This document shows, in pieces, positions 1 through 60,573 of a stretch of 64,000 nt of DNA. The translations under genes were made by a program, and so were the position numbers. The notes under the pieces were generated by a model. It did not search any database and was not told the DNA's origin. It saw nothing but the letters and a program-made list of their open reading frames with translations. Location of the stretch: the NCBI GenBank assembly GCA_024704765.1, contig JAKMXF010000298.1:124001-188000 (forward strand), read 5' to 3'. Origin of the DNA: Oopsacas minuta (Eukaryota > Animalia > Porifera). Within the stretch, counting starts at the first letter, position 1. Every line of letters starts with the position of its first letter.

Positions 1-256
1 TGATATACCAAACAGTTCCTAACCTTCTTCAATAGCGGACCACCTATAGTACCAATTTTAACACATTTGTGGACTCCCTTCCTGCTGTCGTCAGTAGATC
101 ACCAAGGATACATGGACCCCAGGTTTGGAACCGCTGTCATATAGAATCTACCTAGCAACGAATCAAGAATGCAATATAAAGTGAATAGAGTTGTATACTT
201 CACTCTTAAAACGCTTAAATCATATAGAAATATAAAAGATACTCAATAAAGTACTA

Positions 257-1327
257 TTAAGTTTGTTTAGCTATCTCTCCTATAAAATAATCACATTTCT
301 CCATTAATATCTTAATAGACTCCTTCACAATGTCAATAGCAGGTAGAACTCCAATAGATTCTACAGTGAAAATAAAATGATCACTAATTCTTGATAATTC
401 GACCAAATCTTTGAGTTCTTTATGTCTACACACTTCTCTAGTAGCTGTATCCTTCCTGGCATCAAGTACAAAAGCTACATCGATATTATTCACGGTTTTT
501 AGACCGATTACTCCCTCAGCGAAACAAGATTGTAGTTTCCTAGCTAATTCACCTGTGATGGGTTCCAATAGCTTTATAGAAGGTAATAGTCTATAGGTAG
601 CAGTTGCGACAGGTGAAAACTTAGCATGATCCTTGCCTACACCCTTCACACAGTGCAATTTCATTTTAATCTCCTGTCCAGGTCTCAGTTTCATAATTAA
701 GATATCATCTTGACAAGTCTTGACCTCTCCCAACAGCTGTGCTTGATCACCAATAGGAACCCATTTCATATGACGTGTGTATACATTAGAATTCTTATAC
801 TTCTCCTCTGGTAATGTAGCGCCTACTGATGCAGCTTTATTGTGTGAACACTTTATACTAAGCTCAAATTCTAGAACTGAATTAGAGTCTACAATTAGTT
901 GGTTCTTTTCGTTATAAGCGGGGAAATTGAATAGCCTATTAGATTAGAAAATTTAGTTAAAATAGCAAAATTAGAGTAGGGGGTGAATACGTCATAATTA
1001 CCTTGGATCAGCTTTAATAGGAATAAGCCCCATCCTGTGTGCTAACACATCATCTGGCATGACTGACGTATTATTCATCATATACACCTTTTCAATAGCC
1101 ATAATAGGAACTTCTGCTAGCATTATCCTACGGTAAGCATTAGCTATAGAAGCATCAACTCCAATTAAATCAAACTGAATCTCCTCGTCTGTTTTGTACT
1201 TTATATCTACACGGATATCTTTCAGGTATTGCTCAAATGTTTTACCTGTTTCAGCGTGTACATTCTTTGTATCAACTTTGGTCTCACTCAATATTATCTT
1301 TGATTTTATATCACTTAGCGACGCCAT
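257..1327 (-). CDS. POLR1C: RNA polymerase I/III subunit AC40 (RPAC1), 2 exons (1002-1327, 257-935), 334 aa
   Basis: Motifs FDLIGVDASIANAYRRIMLAEVP, LAHRMGLIPIKADPR and HAKFSPVATATY. A 66-bp GT-AG intron (936-1001; AG|GTAAT...CTAATAG|G) joins the two ORF-track pieces in frame. Start is MASLSDIK at 1327. Confidence 0.93.
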
Positions 1328-1351
1328 AGCTAAATTGGAATTTAACGTAGC

Positions 1352-1379
1352 TGATTGATTGATTGATTGATTGATTGAT
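1352..1379. repeat. (TGAT)7 microsatellite
   Basis: tgattgattgattgattgattgattgat read directly, just upstream of the POLR1C start. Confidence 0.95.
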
Positions 1380-1486
1380 AAATAATATACAAATTTAAAA
1401 TATTGGATAAATAATAAACAAACAAATTCCATTCAAAATCTGGGAGGTTAGGAAAACATAAATGTACCAGAATCAAGCGACTCTAG

Positions 1487-1834
1487 TCAGTATTTTAGGG
1501 ATATATATATGGCAAAGTACAACAGTAGAAAGACCACGCCCATCAAAGTGACAATTATCCCGATAACAAGGAAGATAATTGCGATAACACGAGCTATTCT
1601 GTTATACAATATAGCTTTATCGTATTCACCCTTCTGAAACTTCAGGTATGCTATAACTAGGAATATTCCAGCTAGTAGGCCAGGAAATCCAAACATAAAG
1701 TATCCAAGTATAACTAGCACAGCTGTAATCAACAGAGCTCTTTCAGTAATGGGTGCTTCCTGTGTTTGGAGAGTAGCCCCATCAGAAGTGTTGGTCCTCT
1801 GTTGCGATACTAACGCAGTTTTCTCCTCAGTCAT
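1487..1834 (-). CDS. Small two-hydrophobic-segment membrane protein, CD225/dispanin (IFITM/PRRT)-like
   Basis: 115 aa. Pattern hydrophobic-GFPGLLAGIFLVIAYLKFQKGEYDKAILYNRIARVIAIIFLVIG resembles the dispanin hairpin / GDxxxA / second TM layout. Confidence 0.55.
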   Translation of the reverse strand: MTEEKTALVSQQRTNTSDGATLQTQEAPITERALLITAVLVILGYFMFGFPGLLAGIFLVIAYLKFQKGEYDKAILYNRIARVIAIIFLVIGIIVTLMGVVFLLLYFAIYISLKY

Positions 1835-1990
1835 AATATATGCTAAAATTATAATTATTAATGCATTATCATTACAAGGATTTTGACCAGTAACCGGATT
1901 TAACTACGCCTTATAATAATTGGAAAGTTTAATTAGAATCTAAAGTATGATAATGGTAATACGTATAAGGAATTGCTATACTCAAAATAG

Positions 1991-3247
1991 TTATTTCCCT
2001 TTGACTTTACGCTTGAGTTTTGCGAATATTGAACTATAATCGTGTTCCTTGTATTCACCATGTATATCTTCAGGATCGAGAGATTTGGCGAAATTCAATA
2101 AATATTGATGTTGATCTTCAGTTAAGTCTTTAGGTATAGTAATCTTAACATGTAAATAATGATCACCTAGTCCAGTTCCGTTTATCCTTGGTATCCCTCT
2201 GCCAGTGAGTCTTATTTTGTGATGTGATTGAATGCCTGCAGGAACAGCAACATCCATCATGCCATTCAGACCAAGGACACGAATATTCCCACCGAAAACA
2301 GCTTGCACCATATGTACAAAAACATCAGAATGAATATCATCTCCGTCTCTACGGAAGTCTCGTGACTCATGTACGCTAAAACTCAGAATAATCTTCATTC
2401 CTGAGACAGGATCTGTTACCATGGTGCTCTGCCCATGTACCACCCCGGCTGGCACACGAATAGACAGCTCACGTCTTTCCTTTACACTTCCTGTGCCTTT
2501 ACAGTCAAGACACATCCTCTTTGGCATTTTCCCCGCCCCTCTACATCCATCACATGTCTCCTGTATGCGAATAGGCCCTAGCTGGATACCCCGTACTCCT
2601 GAGCCCTTACAAAAGCGACAGGTAGTATATCCGTAACTATTATCAGCTCCATGTCCCTCACAAGTTTCGCACTGCACCTGAAAACTATGAGGAACTTGTT
2701 TAGTACAGCCCTGTACAGCCTCCATAAACGTCAATGCTATTGTATACGAAATCTGAGAGCTACCCATTGACCCACCTCCCATAAACTGACTGATAATATC
2801 CTCAAATTCCTGTGTAAATGAGTGAAACTGTTGCTCAGCTCCATGAAAATCTTGATACCTGAATCCACCACTTCCAAACGAATGATCCTGATGCCCCATT
2901 AAATCATACTGCTGTCTCTTATCCTTATCAGACAGAATCTCATACGCATTACTAATCTCTATAAACTTCTCTTTAGCTCTTGGATCTTTTGTATTCTTAT
3001 CAGGATGGAATTTCTTAGCTAAGTTAAAGTATGCTTTCTTTATTTCTGAATCTGAAGCAGATCTACCTACACCCAATACTTCGTAGTAATCTCGTTTCGC
3101 CAAAAGGGCTGGACTAGTGAATAAGGTACGAGTGAGAGAGGGTGTAACAATGGGTGACGTCACCCTAGGATGGACCTTGTATAAGTTAGGTCGTAAAGAA
3201 AGTGATGTGAGATAGAGAATACGAGAATAACGGAAGATATGACTCAT
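1991..3247 (-). CDS. DNAJA3: Mitochondrial DnaJ (Tid1/DNAJA3-like), intronless
   Basis: R/S-rich N-terminal presequence; J domain DYYEVLGV...HPD; G/F region; four CxxCxGxG repeats; C-terminal [12 protein letters not shown] at 3247. Confidence 0.88.
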
Positions 3248-3357
3248 CACTAATCTTCCCTAAACAGAAAAGAAAAGTTACAATATTGAAAAATAAAAGC
3301 AAGAAGTTCAAACTAAAATTATTATATTATACGATATAACTACTAATATACATTGTT

Positions 3358-4242
3358 CTAAATATGATTATAAACCCATTCAGCCATCAGTTCGGGTCCA
3401 TTAAACATAAACGCATGCAATAAACCTTGATTACACACATGTATATTATTGTTATCAGGATAGTCCCTGACCATGTCAGCTTGAAAAGTCAGAGGTGCCC
3501 AACCGTCGCTCCGTCCGTAATAGAACACAATTTTACTGATGTTCTCCCGTAAAAACTCGTTATCCCGTCTATAAATAAGTTCCATTTCTTCTGTGGATAA
3601 TCCCAAGATATTTGACATTGAGGTAGGGTTTAGAATTGATACGGTAGAATTTGTAAGTATCTTACTACGCTGTGCAGATAGACTACGATACTTCAAGCCT
3701 ATAATAGCACTTAGAAATCTCCTGGGTAAACAATAATGGAAGAAGTATGTCATATAGTATAGCAGCCTATGACAGAAGCGCCCTGTCCTAGATATGAAAA
3801 ATGCACCTTTTGGTGTCAGTCTCATACGCTCGATAGTTGGAAATAGAAAGAAGGATTTAATAACTCTGTCAGGAGGTAGAATTTTCATCATTTCCTGTGT
3901 CACATAACATCCCATTGAATGACCGATTAGAATAATCTTAGAATTCTTATGCGAATCCAATTCTAAGTAAGCCAATTTATGATCTGTTTGATCTTTGAGG
4001 GAGAAGTAAGGAGGCTCTCCCTGCTTAACAACAGGAGGTGAATGTCCAGCATGTGAAATAACTGATACAGCATTTACTCGTTGTGTTAGAGTGAATATGT
4101 GATAAGCAAATTCGTAAAGATACTCTGCATTACCTGGGTTACCTGGTATTATAACTATTTTATAATCACTACTGTCTGTGTTACGTGGTGAAAACTCTAT
4201 TACACCTGTGTCTATACCGTTCAATAATATTCTACGTGACAT
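3358..4242 (-). CDS. LDAH: Lipid droplet-associated hydrolase (alpha/beta hydrolase)
   Basis: IIPGNPG, nucleophile motif GHSMG, FLFPTIERM, FYYGRSDGWAP and HAF, all as in LDAH/C2orf43. Confidence 0.88.
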   Translation of the reverse strand: MSRRILLNGIDTGVIEFSPRNTDSSDYKIVIIPGNPGNAEYLYEFAYHIFTLTQRVNAVSVISHAGHSPPVVKQGEPPYFSLKDQTDHKLAYLELDSHKNSKIILIGHSMGCYVTQEMMKILPPDRVIKSFFLFPTIERMRLTPKGAFFISRTGRFCHRLLYYMTYFFHYCLPRRFLSAIIGLKYRSLSAQRSKILTNSTVSILNPTSMSNILGLSTEEMELIYRRDNEFLRENISKIVFYYGRSDGWAPLTFQADMVRDYPDNNNIHVCNQGLLHAFMFNGPELMAEWVYNHI

Positions 4243-4334
4243 TAATAGCTAATAGAAAAAAACACAATAATATTACTGATAAATATTAAAAGAAGGATAT
4301 TAGTATTGACAAAATTATAACACATAAATACAGT

Positions 4335-4829
4335 CTATTTGGAAATTAATCCTTTCTCCAATAAATCAGGTATTTCCACTGCTATCCATGGAGATAATCC
4401 GAATATTAACAAATGAGATATTCCATACTTTGGTGTATTTCTTGCCCAAAGTGGGTAGAAATGATCCGTTAAACAGATCTTTCCACCTTTATACATTTTC
4501 GCAGTTTTTCCCTCCAATTCCGGGATGAGGATTTCAGGAGCTGAATTAGGGTAAGCAGAGGGAATTGAGAACTCAAATGAAAATTCGTATTTTGTGTAAT
4601 TCTGCGTATGCCAACATTTTCCAATCCATTTCTTTCCTTCTTTATCAGATTCTATTTTAAACCAATCATTTCCATTCTCCTTATTCTTACTAATATACTG
4701 TATTAAACTAGTGTATTCCTCCTTCAGTCTAGCCGGCCATTTCTCATCTCGTGGAGAAGCGTTAATTGTCATAACAGGGGCTGAACCTACTAACTGTTTA
4801 TCCCAAACTTTACTTGTCGATGTTGCCAT
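4335..4829 (-). CDS. UFC1: UFM1-conjugating enzyme 1
   Basis: [40 protein letters not shown] (active-site Cys) and WIAVEIPDL. Confidence 0.97.
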
Positions 4830-5907
4830 TATTTAATGCTATGTATTCGGTCTAGATACTAAATAATCATCACTAGCTTACAAGGTATACATTTCAATTA
4901 AACTTTACACTAAACGCTTATTGTACTAGAGAGTGTTTTCTTAGTGACATAGATTGACGAGCGTAATTCAATAGTTTGTGTATGTAGAAATATTCCTAAA
5001 CAACATAATAGATACAAATTTAGAGTAACCGAGATTAAACATTGTAAAGGAAATAGAGGCAGGAAATAGAGGCAGAAATTCCAACATTAGTCTGTAAACA
5101 TATAATTACTCCTTTTAAAATGCTATATACACTCATACTGAAATTCTTACACAATTTTGAGGGCTCAGAGTGCAAATTCCTAGACTGCACGTGGATTTAA
5201 AGAAAAAGCCATATTCCGTATGCAAAATCATAAGTAGACAAAACTGATACAATATTTTTAGCAAAAATCCAAACAACAAACATATAACATCTTCCAACAA
5301 GCTGGTAGAACACGTGGACGAATAAATTATGTGATATTATGTTGAATTAAATTTTGCTAGGAATGTGACAAGGATGTATAAACTATGTGAAACCTGGTCA
5401 TATGCTAAATTAATCTTGCATAGTATTACCAATTACCAGCCTGGTGGATAAATGTTAATTAGAACTTTGATGACGATAAGTTGAAATAAATTCAGATTAA
5501 GGATTAATAGACTAACAAACAATCCTACATACGGTGACAGACAATCATACTCTGCCTCTTCAGGTTAACAAGATATCTGTTAACTGTGAGGGTTATATCA
5601 CTGCTCATTTAGTGCTGCTAAAGGATAACGAATGAATTATCCTACAACGTAAATATCATTATCAACTAGTTTGATCAATGATCACAAACTAGATTAAATA
5701 TACTCATTATTAATTCCAGGATTGTGTTGCGAAAACTTTTAACTAAGCGTTATTATAAAGTTCTACAGCGTGTTACTTTGTATATCTGCCGTGTCAGGTA
5801 ATTATACACTGATTAAACCTATAATAGTAATATATTAGATAGCAACTATGCCACTATATAAACTCAGAAATTACATTCGGAATAAAATATAATTAAACCC
5901 AACTAAA

Positions 5908-12628: not shown

Positions 12629-13231
12629 AGAAAAAAATGATATCTATTTTAGCGTCTACATTGACACAAAAAGGTTTCAAGGCTCAATAATAACTAAAAG
12701 GAGAAGCAAGGAGAAGTTACATGTGAAATTTCGCACTGCACAAATTCCAATTTATAACATATATGTTAACTTCTAACAACATAAACAGGTCAGACAAGTC
12801 TAAACGAACTGTAACACAATAACATGCAAATATGTATATCAAAATACATAGTGGATCAAAATAAAGGGTATTGAATCCAAATGACTAATCAAATGAATGT
12901 AATAGAACACCATTGAACAGTGTATAGAGATACAAAACAGGATTGATGGATAATTATATTCCAATTGGTTAATAATAGTGTGTGTAACCCAACAAAAGCG
13001 ATAAGACAAAGATGTTTAGCTATGCCAGCTATTTCCATTACTGGCCACATATAAACGCAAATCTATATAGGCTCAGGTTAGCTCATATGCTGATAATAAA
13101 TTATTGATATATTATCTTTATGTTTGAAATAGATAAATAATCATATACTACAGACGTATATTGATATAAATACAGTGTGATTAGCAAGAGGAGAATACTA
13201 GAGGAAAGATTATATTGAAGTGTTTGAAGAA

Positions 13232-15863
13232 ATGAATGAGGTAAATATGTAATTTTGGTGCTTAAAATATTAACCTTAATAATAATTGTGTTTACAAATG
13301 TAAAACAAATTCGTGTATTAGAAAAATTGAGTGTTTGAACAGCTGATCGAATTTAAAAATTATTAAATATTTACTCCTCAAATATTGTCAAAAGTCTGTT
13401 GTCCATCATTATACATATCCAAATTTAGAATATTGGAGAACAACCATGCATCGAAATAAAACCATGCAATAAGGAAAAACAATGCTTTGGCGAAGAGGAC
13501 TTTCCCCTGCCACCACCTGAATCGGACTGGAGATTAGGTAAATACTTTGACGCAATGAACAACATAGAAGGATGTCCAGAACCTCCAGAATTCGAAGAGA
13601 TAGAAGGATACCTTTCGAATTGCACAGACACAGACATGGATGAGTCAGCTTCAGTTTTATACGCTTACAATTATCTCAAAGAATACGTACAGCACATGAA
13701 ATCAGCTAGACAAGCTAAAACCAACTTGATGGCAGCATTACCATCGCCGCAAGGGCAATCGCCCTCTCCAATGTAAGTTCTATGCAAATCCTCGAATAAT
13801 TACAACCAAAATAACCATCAAAAATTGTGTTGATTGGAACCATCTTCTTAATTCGTAACACTTAGTTTTGCAATCAGTGTCAGTATATTAATGGCTATTG
13901 ACATATTAATACAAATATAACAGAACATTCAATTGTTTTAATTAAACTAAAATTACAATTCAATAATTCAAAGCCAAAATGTGGCAAAATTGAATGGAAG
14001 TAGCAAATTAGACAAAACAAATTAGAACCTATTGAACAATCTCACATACGTAGTGTGTAGGACATTTATCACAGTTAAATAATTAAATGAACATTTTATA
14101 ATTATATGTGGTTCACACTATAATATTGGCCAATTATCGCTTATACTAAACTATGACCTCAATTTTTACAAGTATATAGGTCAGTTTGTATATTCTCTTA
14201 TACGTACATATAGGAAAGATTCAGATACAAGTCCGAATAGATATCAAAATACAACAGCTGCACATCGTGGTACACCAAGCGTAGACGACATGGAGGAGTA
14301 CGATCATCTGTCAAGTACAAAGGAAGAATCTTACTACGCAAGCATGAATATTAGACCTGATTATAATCCTCAACTAGAAGTGAGGAGAACGTTATCAGAT
14401 GGCCCTCAGAAGATAGCACACAAGAACGGTTACGCTATTCCCTACATCACAAGGTATCGCACATCAAATCTACATTTACCAATAAGTAAGTTACAAAGCA
14501 CGAAATGACTTTAATTACGAATAAATTTATACAATAAACTCCTGTTATATCAAGGAACAAGGGACCGTGATAATTAATTCGACATAATGAAATTCGACTT
14601 CACCGGATAAATATATGTTACCTTAACTTCGATATGAGCTGGTATTTTGATATATCCGTGTTCGAAATAAAGGGAGTTGATTGTAATATTCTTCTTATAG
14701 AGGGAATGGTATCGTATCCAAATAACATACAACGTCGTGAACAAGCAGAAATAGTGGAGATTTGCTCACCTAGCGATACGTCTATGTGTAGTACCCCTTA
14801 TTGGCTGAATCGGCCCGCTGCCCCAGGGAGAAATGAGAGAATAGTATACGAGAGTGTCGATAAGCTAGGAGTGAGGCAAGATAGTGATGAGTATTTTCTA
14901 CCGAGGACAAAAGACAAGCAAAGTAACTCAGATTCATCTAATAGTCATCATCACCAGAATATGACAAATGAATCTAATCGTACAATCCCAAAGAGGAGGA
15001 AATTCAAACGCCCGAATAATCGCAGTAAAATATACGTCACAACTAATACAGTATTCAATCAGCCGATTATACACTCTAAGCAGTGTCTAGATTCACTCAA
15101 TTCCGATGAAGTACGGCCATGTGATTGTCTGAAAACAGTTGTTGCAAACCAGAAAAACAAACAACAAACTAATAGCCCGTTAAAGAACGTACATGTAATG
15201 GAGTCTATTCAGGACGGAGAAATCTCAAACTTTACCTCTGTCATAAAGAAGAAACTGAACAGGACCCGAGGTGTTGATGACTGGGCTATTCCTTGTCCAC
15301 ATTCTATCAGTTCTGACAATACATATGCAGATGATTTCAATACATACGATCGAACTAGTAATCACGAGTACATAACACGTAGCTTTACGTCATATAACTC
15401 GTGCGATGGTACAATGAACGATACAGATTCATTATCTCAAAGCTATACACATATACCTTACAATCCTAATAAAGAAAATTTCCAGGCAAGCGGTGAGGAA
15501 ATCAACAAGTCACCAATGTATATGCCGAATGAGAGATGGAATTTCGCATTTGTACCCTATAATCCAACGGAAAATAGACCAAAAGCATGCAGATTTCATA
15601 GCATTGATACACTAACGAGTAGTGACAACAGATCTGTTGCGGAAAATTTCAGATCTGACTCAAGTTTTGTTTCCAAAAACAGTTCGAAAAACACAAAATC
15701 AGAAGCTAGCGCTAGCTCTTCTTGCTCCTCAAGAGGTAGTAGCTTAAACAACAATTCGAAAGAACACAAACCTTATTCCAAATCATTCTTCAAAAGTTTC
15801 TCTCCTAAGTTCATCAAAAGCAACAACAAATCTCCGGTAAAGAGACAAGTGAGTGAATTATAA
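13232..15863 (+). CDS. Uncharacterised, largely low-complexity Ser/Asn/Tyr-rich protein, at least 4 exons (13232-13240, 13429-13772, 14214-14485, 14701-15863), about 595 aa; further 5' exons possible
   Basis: Phase-compatible junctions: GAG|GTAAAT...TTTAG|AAT (phase 0); AT|GTAAGT...ATAG|G (phase 2); A|GTAAGT...TTATAG|AG (phase 1). These link three ORF-track pieces into one frame. Confidence 0.65.
14532..14683 (-). mobile_element. MITE family A copy (Tc1/mariner-pogo type) filling most of intron 14486-14700
   Basis: TA|caataaactcctgttatatc ... gggagttgattg|TA. The internal agggaccgtgataattaattcgacataa is the reverse complement of the family core ttatgtcgaa..tatcacggtccct. Confidence 0.8.
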
Positions 15864-40050: not shown

Positions 40051-40814
40051 GATGATGGTAATCGAATAGTAATTTTTCCCCCTAAGTAACTAATATATTA
40101 TCATTAAAATTTGATAAAAATGTAAAATCGATCGCGATCCAAAATAGAATGGTAACTTGAGGGAAAATTTGATATTCATCACACAAAACTCATGGGTCAT
40201 TATGAATTTATGATAGTAACATTAGAAAAAGTAGAGTAAATTAATGATTCGCCTAGCAAAAACGTATCCTAATTACCTGAAATGTGGATTGAAATTTCCC
40301 AAAATAAAGTTGGGGGGTTAAAATTAGAAACGAAGAAGTGGATAAAAATAGAGCATTGAAAATTAAGGCAAGCTTATGAACATAGAGCTTATGGGTTAAT
40401 TAAAAGTTACTATTCTTATATACTTTGTGTTCTAAAATAGATATCACTTACTCCACAGCACCTGCATAGCCAAATGTATTACACTAAATTTAGAATTTTC
40501 TAAATATAGAAATCACGAGAAAAATGATGTCATATAAAATGCAATGATTTTAGTGTGTAGCTGGTATATCGAATTCCTTAGTAGTTTCTAGCTTAGCTAC
40601 TACTAATCAGGGTAAGATAGTGTCAGATTGGATAATGTATTTTACGTAAAAGCTATAGGGCAAATTAATGGTGAAAGAAGGGCGGTACGAACCTAACTAA
40701 TTACTTCATGGTATAATTGCAATTTATCGAGGGATGGGAGGAATTCTGGTTATATATTAGCTGCATAGCGTGCGTAATTGTGAACTAGTCCATAACATTA
40801 TACTTTCGGGATTA

Positions 40815-40987
40815 CAGTGTAACCTCCACAAACGAGGTGCCAGGGGGGGGCGAAAATCTTACCCCGTTCCACTCGTTTCTACCAAATTCTCCGTTGATGG
40901 AGGTTCATTTGAACGGGAGTAGGAATTCGCTCTAGATATTTATAATTCACTCAGTTTCCACAGGCCACGTTTGTGGAGGTTTCACTG
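40815..40987. mobile_element. MITE family B (173 bp, about 21-bp TIRs, TA target-site duplication)
   Basis: TA|cagtgtaacctccacaaacg ... cgtttgtggaggtttcactg|TA; a single mismatch between the TIRs. Confidence 0.88.
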
Positions 40988-41173
40988 TAACCTTGCAAAT
41001 AGCACAATATTTTCCTATTGATCATTAGTTCCACATAATCCTATAGCTTACAAATCCGTGTAAAAATAGAATGTGACTTGCAACTTAATATAGCGAACAC
41101 AAGCCTATAGTAATATTCTAATAATAATATGCAAGTTAATTGAGTAAGAAATCAATTGCCTGAACAATTGGAA

Positions 41174-59804: not shown

Positions 59805-60573
59805 ACCAACCAAATAAGCAGACCCAGCGAAATGTCTAAACTGATTTGATTGTGAGTGAATCTATTTACGATAGGGCAAAAGAAAACTAAATCGGATTTC
59901 TTGGTGTCAATTACCCACCATTTTACTCGTTTTTCGAGACCCATTATATAATCTCTATGTAGAATCTAAATATTTTGGTGGCTTAGTTAGCTACCAGATT
60001 AAGGATTTTGGTGGCTAACGCCACCAAACCACCTAATTTGTCGAGTACTGACTGTGATACTTCGGTGACTCAAAAACAACTAACGATCTCTTTTTAGAGA
60101 ATAAATTATAGGGTTGTTTGCGCTGACTACCGATCTCGGCTCAATTTTTGAGTTTAGCAGTATCGATAATTATATCTGGGACGTAACCAACTGAACATAA
60201 CGGTTGTTAGTTGATACATTGGTACGGGTATCAAACCAACAACCTCGTGCCTGGTGGCTTACGGCCCTACAGTATCCGTGCTCACCCCATACCAAAACTT
60301 GGTGGAGAAGAGGAACTCGTATTATAGACGGAGATCCGATATATGGGCCATACGTTATGGTAAAATTTGCCCTCATATTTCAACCAATTATGTAATTAAA
60401 ACGCTTAAATATCGAAATAGCCTTATGAATATAAGTCTGCATCAATCTAAAAAATTTACATCGGAAATCACACATTTATATCAAATTTTATACCAGACTA
60501 TGTTCGGAAGGTTATAATTTTGACATTACGTATAAGGAAATTTTCGAGAAATACCTCTCTCTATATTCGATAG

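Follow-up and report, generated by a model that had tools for sequence, protein, structure and literature searches.

Conserved splice acceptors in a closely packed, co-oriented gene run of the glass sponge Oopsacas minuta, and a possible origin of its mRNAs from small polycistronic units

Layout of the gene run

The stretch of DNA studied here, which we call the window, comprises 64,000 nucleotides (nt) of the genome of the glass sponge Oopsacas minuta (contig JAKMXF010000298.1, positions 124,001 to 188,000 of the forward strand). Near its left edge lie five genes, UFC1, LDAH, DNAJA3, a CD225/dispanin-like gene and POLR1C, which are read one after another on the minus strand and whose stop-to-ATG gaps measure only 92, 110, 156 and 159 nt. 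A first-pass annotation of the window had proposed that these genes form an operon of five, with one promoter upstream of UFC1 and with the short spacers as intercistronic regions. According to open reading frame (ORF) coordinates and Pfam matches, the genes, their order and their four gaps are exactly as that annotation gave them; the extent is not, since the run has eight genes and the window edge cuts through it. In the 30 kb that we examined leftward, the run goes on, still on the minus strand, with LONP, TMEM192 and FANCI, at further gaps of 288, 198 and 169 nt. The whole comprises eight unrelated housekeeping genes in about 13 kb.

At this locus we describe a further case of a mechanism already known, namely acceptors for a spliced leader (SL) in a packed and conserved run of genes. 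The short spacers hold functional-looking 3' splice acceptors that have been conserved in evolution, and in a relative's RNA a non-local leader is joined at the acceptor of LDAH, the second gene.

The genes of the run are as follows. Coordinates here and below are window positions, negative values lying to the left of the window start, and gene identities are taken from Pfam profile matches to the ORF translations.

4829..4335, minus strand: UFC1, first gene of the run; 164 amino acids, intronless (PF08694, E = 4e-73)
4242..3358, minus strand: LDAH (lipid-droplet hydrolase); 294 amino acids (PF10230, LIDHydrolase, E = 2e-56)
3247..1991, minus strand: DNAJA3-type DnaJ; 418 amino acids (DnaJ, DnaJ_C and DnaJ_CXXCXGXG)
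1834..1487, minus strand: CD225/dispanin-like small two-helix membrane protein; 115 amino acids (CD225 sub-threshold, E = 0.0014)
1327..1002 (exon 1) and 935..257 (exon 2), minus strand: POLR1C/RPAC1; 334 amino acids (RNA_pol_L/RNA_pol_A_bac across both exons)
1001..936, minus strand: POLR1C intron; 66 nt, GT-AG
-32..-3081, minus strand: LONP, multi-exon Lon protease, sixth gene
-3280..-4206, minus strand: TMEM192, seventh gene
-4376..-8380, minus strand: FANCI, eighth gene, followed by a convergent MBOAT gene

The LDAH protein is 62-73% identical to its glass-sponge orthologues (P0001-P0007), and a CD225 match was found for five of the six orthologues of the small membrane protein. POLR1C was compared exon by exon, as separate queries, and its exon 2 is 100% identical to the NCBI RPAC1 of Oopsacas minuta (P0167, 334 amino acids).

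Splice acceptors in the short spacers

The first-pass annotation had pointed out that each of the four gaps closes with an acceptor-like YAG (TAG or CAG). This is the case throughout, the site being a TTAG in every spacer:

4243..4334, minus strand: UFC1 to LDAH, 92 nt; pyrimidine run and TTAG, AG at 4250-4249, 6 nt before the ATG
3248..3357, minus strand: LDAH to DNAJA3, 110 nt; long pyrimidine tract and TTTAG, AG at 3261-3260, 12 nt before the ATG
1835..1990, minus strand: DNAJA3 to CD225, 156 nt; TTTAG, AG at 1844-1843, 8 nt before the ATG
1328..1486, minus strand: CD225 to POLR1C, 159 nt; TTTAG, AG at 1331-1330, 2 nt before the ATG
1..256 within the window, minus strand: POLR1C to LONP, 288 nt in full

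The spacer before DNAJA3 has a second TTAG, with its AG at 3251-3250, only 2 nt before the ATG; at the acceptor of this spacer the sequence TGTTTAG/RNAAG (a slash marks the putative splice point) is kept in O. minuta and in two of the relatives compared below, L001 and L002. In the spacer between DNAJA3 and CD225 an ATTAAA lies 58 nt past the DNAJA3 stop codon and is kept in L001; from there the next acceptor is about 60 nt away. The spacer before POLR1C contains a (CAAT)7 microsatellite at about 1346-1375, which ends in a CAG some 20 nt before the proximal TTAG.

In order to judge how unusual such sites are, we compared the gene starts on a 94-kb map of 42 genes, curated with Pfam, with 706 control ATGs. 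Of the 42 gene starts, 29 have a YAG no more than 15 nt from the ATG, as do 238 of the 706 controls (34%; Fisher P = 8e-6); TAGC lies within 14 nt at 11 of the 42 starts as against 4% of the controls. An acceptor within 9 nt of the ATG is present in 11/13 genes that follow a short gap and in 5/14 genes that stand first in a run.

Of 35 orthologous starts in six species, 33 have a YAG no further than 15 nt from the ATG, the background being 34%; the corresponding binomial probability of 7e-14 takes no account of shared ancestry. When O. minuta and its relatives are compared, the spacers hold no conserved motif besides the acceptor and are otherwise unalignable. Since the acceptors are kept even so, we regard this as strong evidence of constraint on the acceptors. 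The conserved acceptor just before the ATG also helps in practice when gene starts are annotated in the genomes of glass sponges.

A spliced leader at the LDAH acceptor of a relative

Direct evidence of splicing at one of these sites comes from the species of locus L005. A Logan contig of 1006 nt (L006) is the mRNA of its LDAH orthologue; starting 30 nt ahead of the ATG and ending 73 nt beyond the stop codon, it follows the genome colinearly. Nucleotides 1-15 of this contig differ from the genomic sequence, and the point at which the match starts is immediately preceded in the genome by CTAG (CTAG/A), 30 nt before the LDAH ATG. With up to 3 mismatches allowed, the 15-nt leader is absent from the 16.9 kb of L005, that is, from 8 kb on either side of the gene; it is likewise absent from every other locus compared. 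The non-local origin of these 15 nt and their exact join at an acceptor imply SL trans-splicing onto LDAH. For the relative, which shows both the non-local leader and the 3' acceptor by which such splicing is recognised, we consider this well supported, and the conservation of the sites suggests that O. minuta uses the same acceptors.

That a spliced leader is trans-spliced has been reported for hexactinellids (PMC7986045, PMC10282587; also Douris et al. 2010, cited by PMC7986045 and PMC12460157), and the leader of Aphrocallistes vastus is about 37 nt long (PMC10282587). Our observations differ in no way in kind: they consist of unpaired acceptors before ATGs and of a non-local leader in a related glass sponge. 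What they would add is the conserved position of the acceptors in six assemblies, together with a candidate family of SL genes in O. minuta.

For the relatives' UFC1, DNAJA3, CD225 and POLR1C we found no RNA: the matches were genomic only, with no spliced POLR1C transcript. Look-ups of the exact O. minuta proteins UFC1, LDAH, DNAJA3 and CD225 gave no match among the accessible records. Two Logan contigs that carry both UFC1 and LDAH (L003 and L004) were considered as bicistronic RNA and rejected; we take them to be DNA because their runs are tied to metagenome assembly, and because L003 also crosses the head-to-head junction. A further Logan contig with UFC1 (L027, 70% identical, with 459 leaderless nt 5' of the ATG) was set aside, as DNA and RNA are indistinguishable in its case.

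Candidate spliced-leader RNA genes

The O. minuta genome was searched with the relative's leader followed by GT, which returned three recurrent families of matches. Two of these proved to be transposons, one integrase-like and the other hAT-like, and were rejected as SL genes. The third is dispersed and non-coding; its copies, of which there are at least 13 (loci L037-L049), have in common a conserved block of some 260 nt. The family contains a sequence of the form ...ATTCACAAAC(T/C)TAG(A/T)TACAG, followed by GT, in several variants of the 3' end. This sequence, which ends in ...ATACAG before the GT, agrees with the leader of the relative in 12-13 of 15 nt. A TATAAG stands some 57 nt upstream of the GT; about 30 nt downstream there is an AAUUUUG, U-rich and Sm-like. 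The family has no match in Rfam, and its predicted fold is no better than that of shuffled sequence. The genome search found no leader fused to sequence other than GT, which would have been a sign of retro-copies. We regard the family as candidate SL RNA genes only. Five copies are placed as follows:

G000:C343:560756-560996, plus strand: copy of the leader-match family
C343:612017-612256, plus strand: copy of the leader-match family
C334:228047-228239, minus strand: copy of the leader-match family
C10:64032-64206, minus strand: copy of the leader-match family
C299:1022062-1022221, plus strand: copy of the leader-match family

Conservation of the run in other glass sponges

A search with LDAH gave seven glass-sponge orthologues on long contigs, and five of these loci (L001, L002, L005, L057 and L058) were compared with O. 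minuta. Two of them, L057 and L058, contain all eight genes in the same order and orientation; in L001, L002 and L005 the genes of the run within the sequence covered keep their order and orientation as well. Spacer lengths, measured from homology-anchored starts and with O. minuta given first, are:

UFC1 to LDAH: 92, 75, 76, 131, 134 and 245 nt
LDAH to DNAJA3: 110, 112, 114, 128 and 352 nt, and 5450 nt in L005
DNAJA3 to CD225: 156, 155, 255, 269 and about 1018 nt
CD225 to POLR1C: 159, 215, 237, 280 and 290 nt

The junction between UFC1 and LDAH is the most constant, at 75-134 nt in five of the six species, and in four species the distance from the UFC1 stop codon to the LDAH acceptor is just 66-101 nt.

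The run of L001 has also been rearranged from within. It holds two tandem partial duplicates of DNAJA3, each of 176 amino acids and with the J domain only (L001:9028-10233 and 12630-14054), as well as a second CD225-like copy, with scraps of POLR1C exon 1 and of DNAJA3 between the duplicates.

Co-transcription versus compact promoters

We propose that the five genes of the window are part of a conserved, co-oriented, eight-gene housekeeping run in a compact genome, in which each mRNA would be matured by SL trans-splicing at the conserved YAG 2-12 nt before its ATG. Each short spacer would then begin with the 3' untranslated region (UTR) of the gene before it, together with that gene's 3'-end signals, and pass straight into the pyrimidine tract and acceptor of the gene that follows. 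As the distance from a stop codon to the following acceptor is no more than about 65-150 nt, the primary transcript of the downstream gene would have to start inside its neighbour or upstream of it. The 66-101 nt between the UFC1 stop codon and the LDAH acceptor likewise imply that the UFC1 3' end and the LDAH outron overlap under any model. The likeliest route to such an arrangement would be read-through co-transcription at the tightest junctions, from UFC1 through LDAH to DNAJA3 and perhaps beyond, and its outcome would be small SL-resolved polycistronic units rather than one obligatory operon of five genes. We give the tightest pairs slightly less than an even chance of being co-transcribed. 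That the tightest junctions are true SL-resolved polycistronic units, with UFC1 and LDAH as the best candidate and an extent probably up to DNAJA3, we put forward a little more tentatively.

Several observations weigh against this proposal, and some of them favour a different explanation of the same spacers. According to the latter, each gene has an independent compact promoter, situated either in the spacer or within the upstream gene's 3' end, from which an outron is transcribed and exchanged for the spliced leader; there would be no polycistronic RNA, and tight packing would reflect genome compaction only. We consider this explanation a serious one, if on the whole rather doubtful. It is consistent with the RNA, as no contig spanning two genes was found in the relatives' data, which are sparse. 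The relatives, moreover, tolerate large interruptions of the run: LDAH and DNAJA3 are parted in L005 by a 5.4-kb transposon nest (L005:8990-14043) that contains hAT-like C-terminal fragments in inverted orientation, a Helitron-like N-terminal ORF, a satellite with a unit of about 50 nt, open in several frames, and antisense ORFs; the spacer between DNAJA3 and CD225 reaches about 1 kb in L001; and two junctions of L058 are stretched to 245 and 352 nt.

Neither the acceptors nor the gene order singles out an operon. On the 94-kb map acceptors are as common at genes with a long upstream gap (10/15) and at genes that stand first in a run (8/14). UFC1 itself has a YAG at 4839, 9 nt before its ATG, and a conserved CTAG/AC at 4852, about 22 nt upstream. 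Since first genes have them too, an acceptor does not mark membership of an operon; it is a general feature of this genome and nothing specific to downstream genes. As to gene order, the flanking genes on the opposite strand (the TRAF-like gene, a 440-amino-acid gene, CDC26, a WD40 gene and an amine oxidase) are conserved equally, and so synteny does not single out the run: in the six assemblies its linkage is kept no better than that of neighbouring non-operon genes. Extensive microsynteny among glass sponges is already known (PMC10282587). The tandem gaps of the 94-kb map, which appear to form classes of 80-198 and 284-497 nt, are not significantly separable either (n = 28, P about 0.18, with no gain in the Bayesian information criterion).

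A head-to-head pair to the left of the window, where the ATGs of DNTTIP1 (minus strand) and MED7 (plus strand) are 114 bp apart (L029:7250 and 7365; window -12750 and -12635), indicates that this genome has working promoter regions of very small size. Both starts appear secure, in that the Pfam match of MED7 begins at model position 1 and the DNTTIP1 frame is not extendable upstream, and each gene has a YAG near its ATG. Two promoters can therefore fit in a gap of this size; the pair would have either a very small bidirectional promoter region or transcripts that begin inside the neighbouring gene.

Compact promoters are nevertheless hard to place in the run itself. The 66-101 nt available between UFC1 and the LDAH acceptor must also house the UFC1 3' end, and the spacers have no conserved motif besides the acceptor, unlike the promoter of the TRAF-like gene with its conserved TATA box. 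In other animals that trans-splice, same-strand pairs this close are usually operons (cf. PMC12460157).

Two further explanations are less probable. The exact model of the first-pass annotation, in which one promoter in the junction between UFC1 and the TRAF-like gene drives a single transcript through five (or eight) genes with no internal promoters, agrees with the co-orientation of the genes, their gaps of 92-159 nt, the single-copy 1078-bp junction upstream and the gene order kept in six species. Against it, no RNA contig across two genes was found in the relatives' data; the junctions from POLR1C to LONP (288 nt) and from LONP to TMEM192 (198 nt) are longer than the others; and an obligatory single unit is hard to square with the nest between genes 2 and 3 in L005 and the 1-kb spacer between genes 3 and 4 in L001. 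We think it improbable. Still further down the scale, and in our view very unlikely indeed, is the notion that the YAGs are acceptors of 5'-UTR introns that are spliced in cis, the spacers holding short non-coding first exons, and that no trans-splicing takes place. GT dinucleotides are present in the spacers, but a promoter, an exon and an intron would not fit into 75-110 nt; the LDAH leader of the relative is not encoded near its gene, as described above; and this leader resembles the multi-copy O. minuta family that ends in ...ATACAG before GT.

The operon claim of the first-pass annotation survives in part. Conserved acceptors, the leader at the LDAH acceptor of a relative and a geometry that favours overlapping transcription speak for it, and the stretched or broken junctions of relatives, the acceptor on the first gene and the unspecific synteny speak against it.

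Comparison with known systems

Operons resolved by a spliced leader are known from nematodes, tunicates, flatworms and chaetognaths, and from a few further groups. The present run resembles the SL2-type operons of C. elegans in its unrelated, same-strand housekeeping genes, in spacers of about 100-160 nt, and in the succession of upstream 3'-end signals and a trans-splice acceptor; the spacer between DNAJA3 and CD225, with its ATTAAA and about 60 nt to the acceptor, looks much like a nematode intercistronic region. It differs from them in that the spacers of glass-sponge relatives reach 250-1000 nt; polycistronic RNA, a specialised leader for downstream genes and a U-rich Ur element are marks of the nematode type.

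The gaps of 92-159 nt lie within the spacing expected of operons of the nematode, tunicate or chaetognath type (about 100 nt, or less than 250 bp). With the operons of tunicates (Ciona, Oikopleura) and chaetognaths the run shares this spacing, as well as its housekeeping genes and a compact genome. Tunicate operons are mostly without intercistronic spacers, whereas those of the glass-sponge run measure 75-290 nt. For chaetognaths, a working definition treats as operons those same-strand genes that lie less than 250 bp apart and have SL evidence (PMC12460157), and the spacing agrees with that part of the rule.

A further parallel is found in microsporidia, which have compact genomes and overlapping transcription units and no spliced leader. 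Here too intergenic distances of about 100 nt would force the transcripts of neighbours to overlap; in the glass-sponge run, by contrast with microsporidia, a leader acceptor would set the 5' end of the mRNA.

The remark in the first-pass annotation that no operons have been described in sponges is borne out: none are reported for hexactinellids (PMC7986045), our literature search found no report of operons in sponges, and the paper on the O. minuta genome is silent on both operons and trans-splicing. Should the proposed units be real, Porifera would have its first demonstrated operons, and the occurrence of SL-resolved operons would reach down to one of the earliest branches of the animals. 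Co-transcription of the tight pairs would mean that operons arose or were retained in an early animal lineage, alongside genome compaction. Without co-transcription of the pairs, the run would instead illustrate how far promoters and overlapping transcription units can be reduced in size in the genome of an animal.

Neighbouring junctions and surroundings

The distances between adjacent genes on the 94-kb map are:

Tandem gaps, stop to ATG: 80-198 nt (13 cases), 284-497 nt (12) and 609-2302 nt (3)
Convergent gaps: 65-435 nt
Head-to-head gaps: 114, 443, 789, 1078, 1123, 1668 and 2005 bp
4830..5907, no strand: head-to-head junction between UFC1 and the TRAF-like gene; 1078 bp, single-copy

The first-pass annotation had set the short spacers against three much longer head-to-head junctions, and these measure 1078 bp (UFC1/TRAF-like), 1123 bp (EEF2/RTK) and 1668 bp (BAHD1/FGGY). 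Its generalisation that head-to-head junctions are much longer is true of the medians and fails for the 443 bp between an ANK-CH gene and a 332-amino-acid gene in the window, and for the 114 bp between DNTTIP1 and MED7. The repeats that it had seen in the latter two of its junctions were confirmed as interspersed in both: the one between EEF2 and the receptor gene (EGFR) is about 180 bp long (window ~40811-40990) and has at least 40 copies of 70-82% identity, and that between BAHD1 and FGGY is about 150 bp long (window ~59901-60051), with at least 25 copies of up to 91% identity. On the 94-kb map the clustering of strand switches is not significant given the strand bias (P = 0.21).

In the junction between UFC1 and the TRAF-like gene, the sequence TATATAAA at 5851-5858 lies about 50 nt before the TRAF-like ATG (5908) and is kept in four glass sponges; a second conserved block lies about 180 nt from the same ATG. 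We read TATATAAA as a TATA box, and as what a conventional promoter looks like in the O. minuta genome. The TRAF-like gene, which encodes RING and zf-TRAF domains, has no acceptor before its ATG, and thus conventional TATA promoters appear to coexist with leader-accepting genes.

Some smaller features lie to the left of the run. B3GALT follows DNTTIP1 after 80 nt (L029:6612-6693; window -13388..-13307) and lacks a YAG in the 40 nt before its ATG; the sole acceptor-like site before it is an AATAG/CT about 62 nt upstream, directly past the DNTTIP1 stop codon. Two tandem MBOAT paralogues on the plus strand, 310 nt apart, occupy L029:8355-9779 and L028:90-1502 (window -11645..-8498), and the first of them follows MED7 after 92 nt, with the acceptor TTAG/CT.

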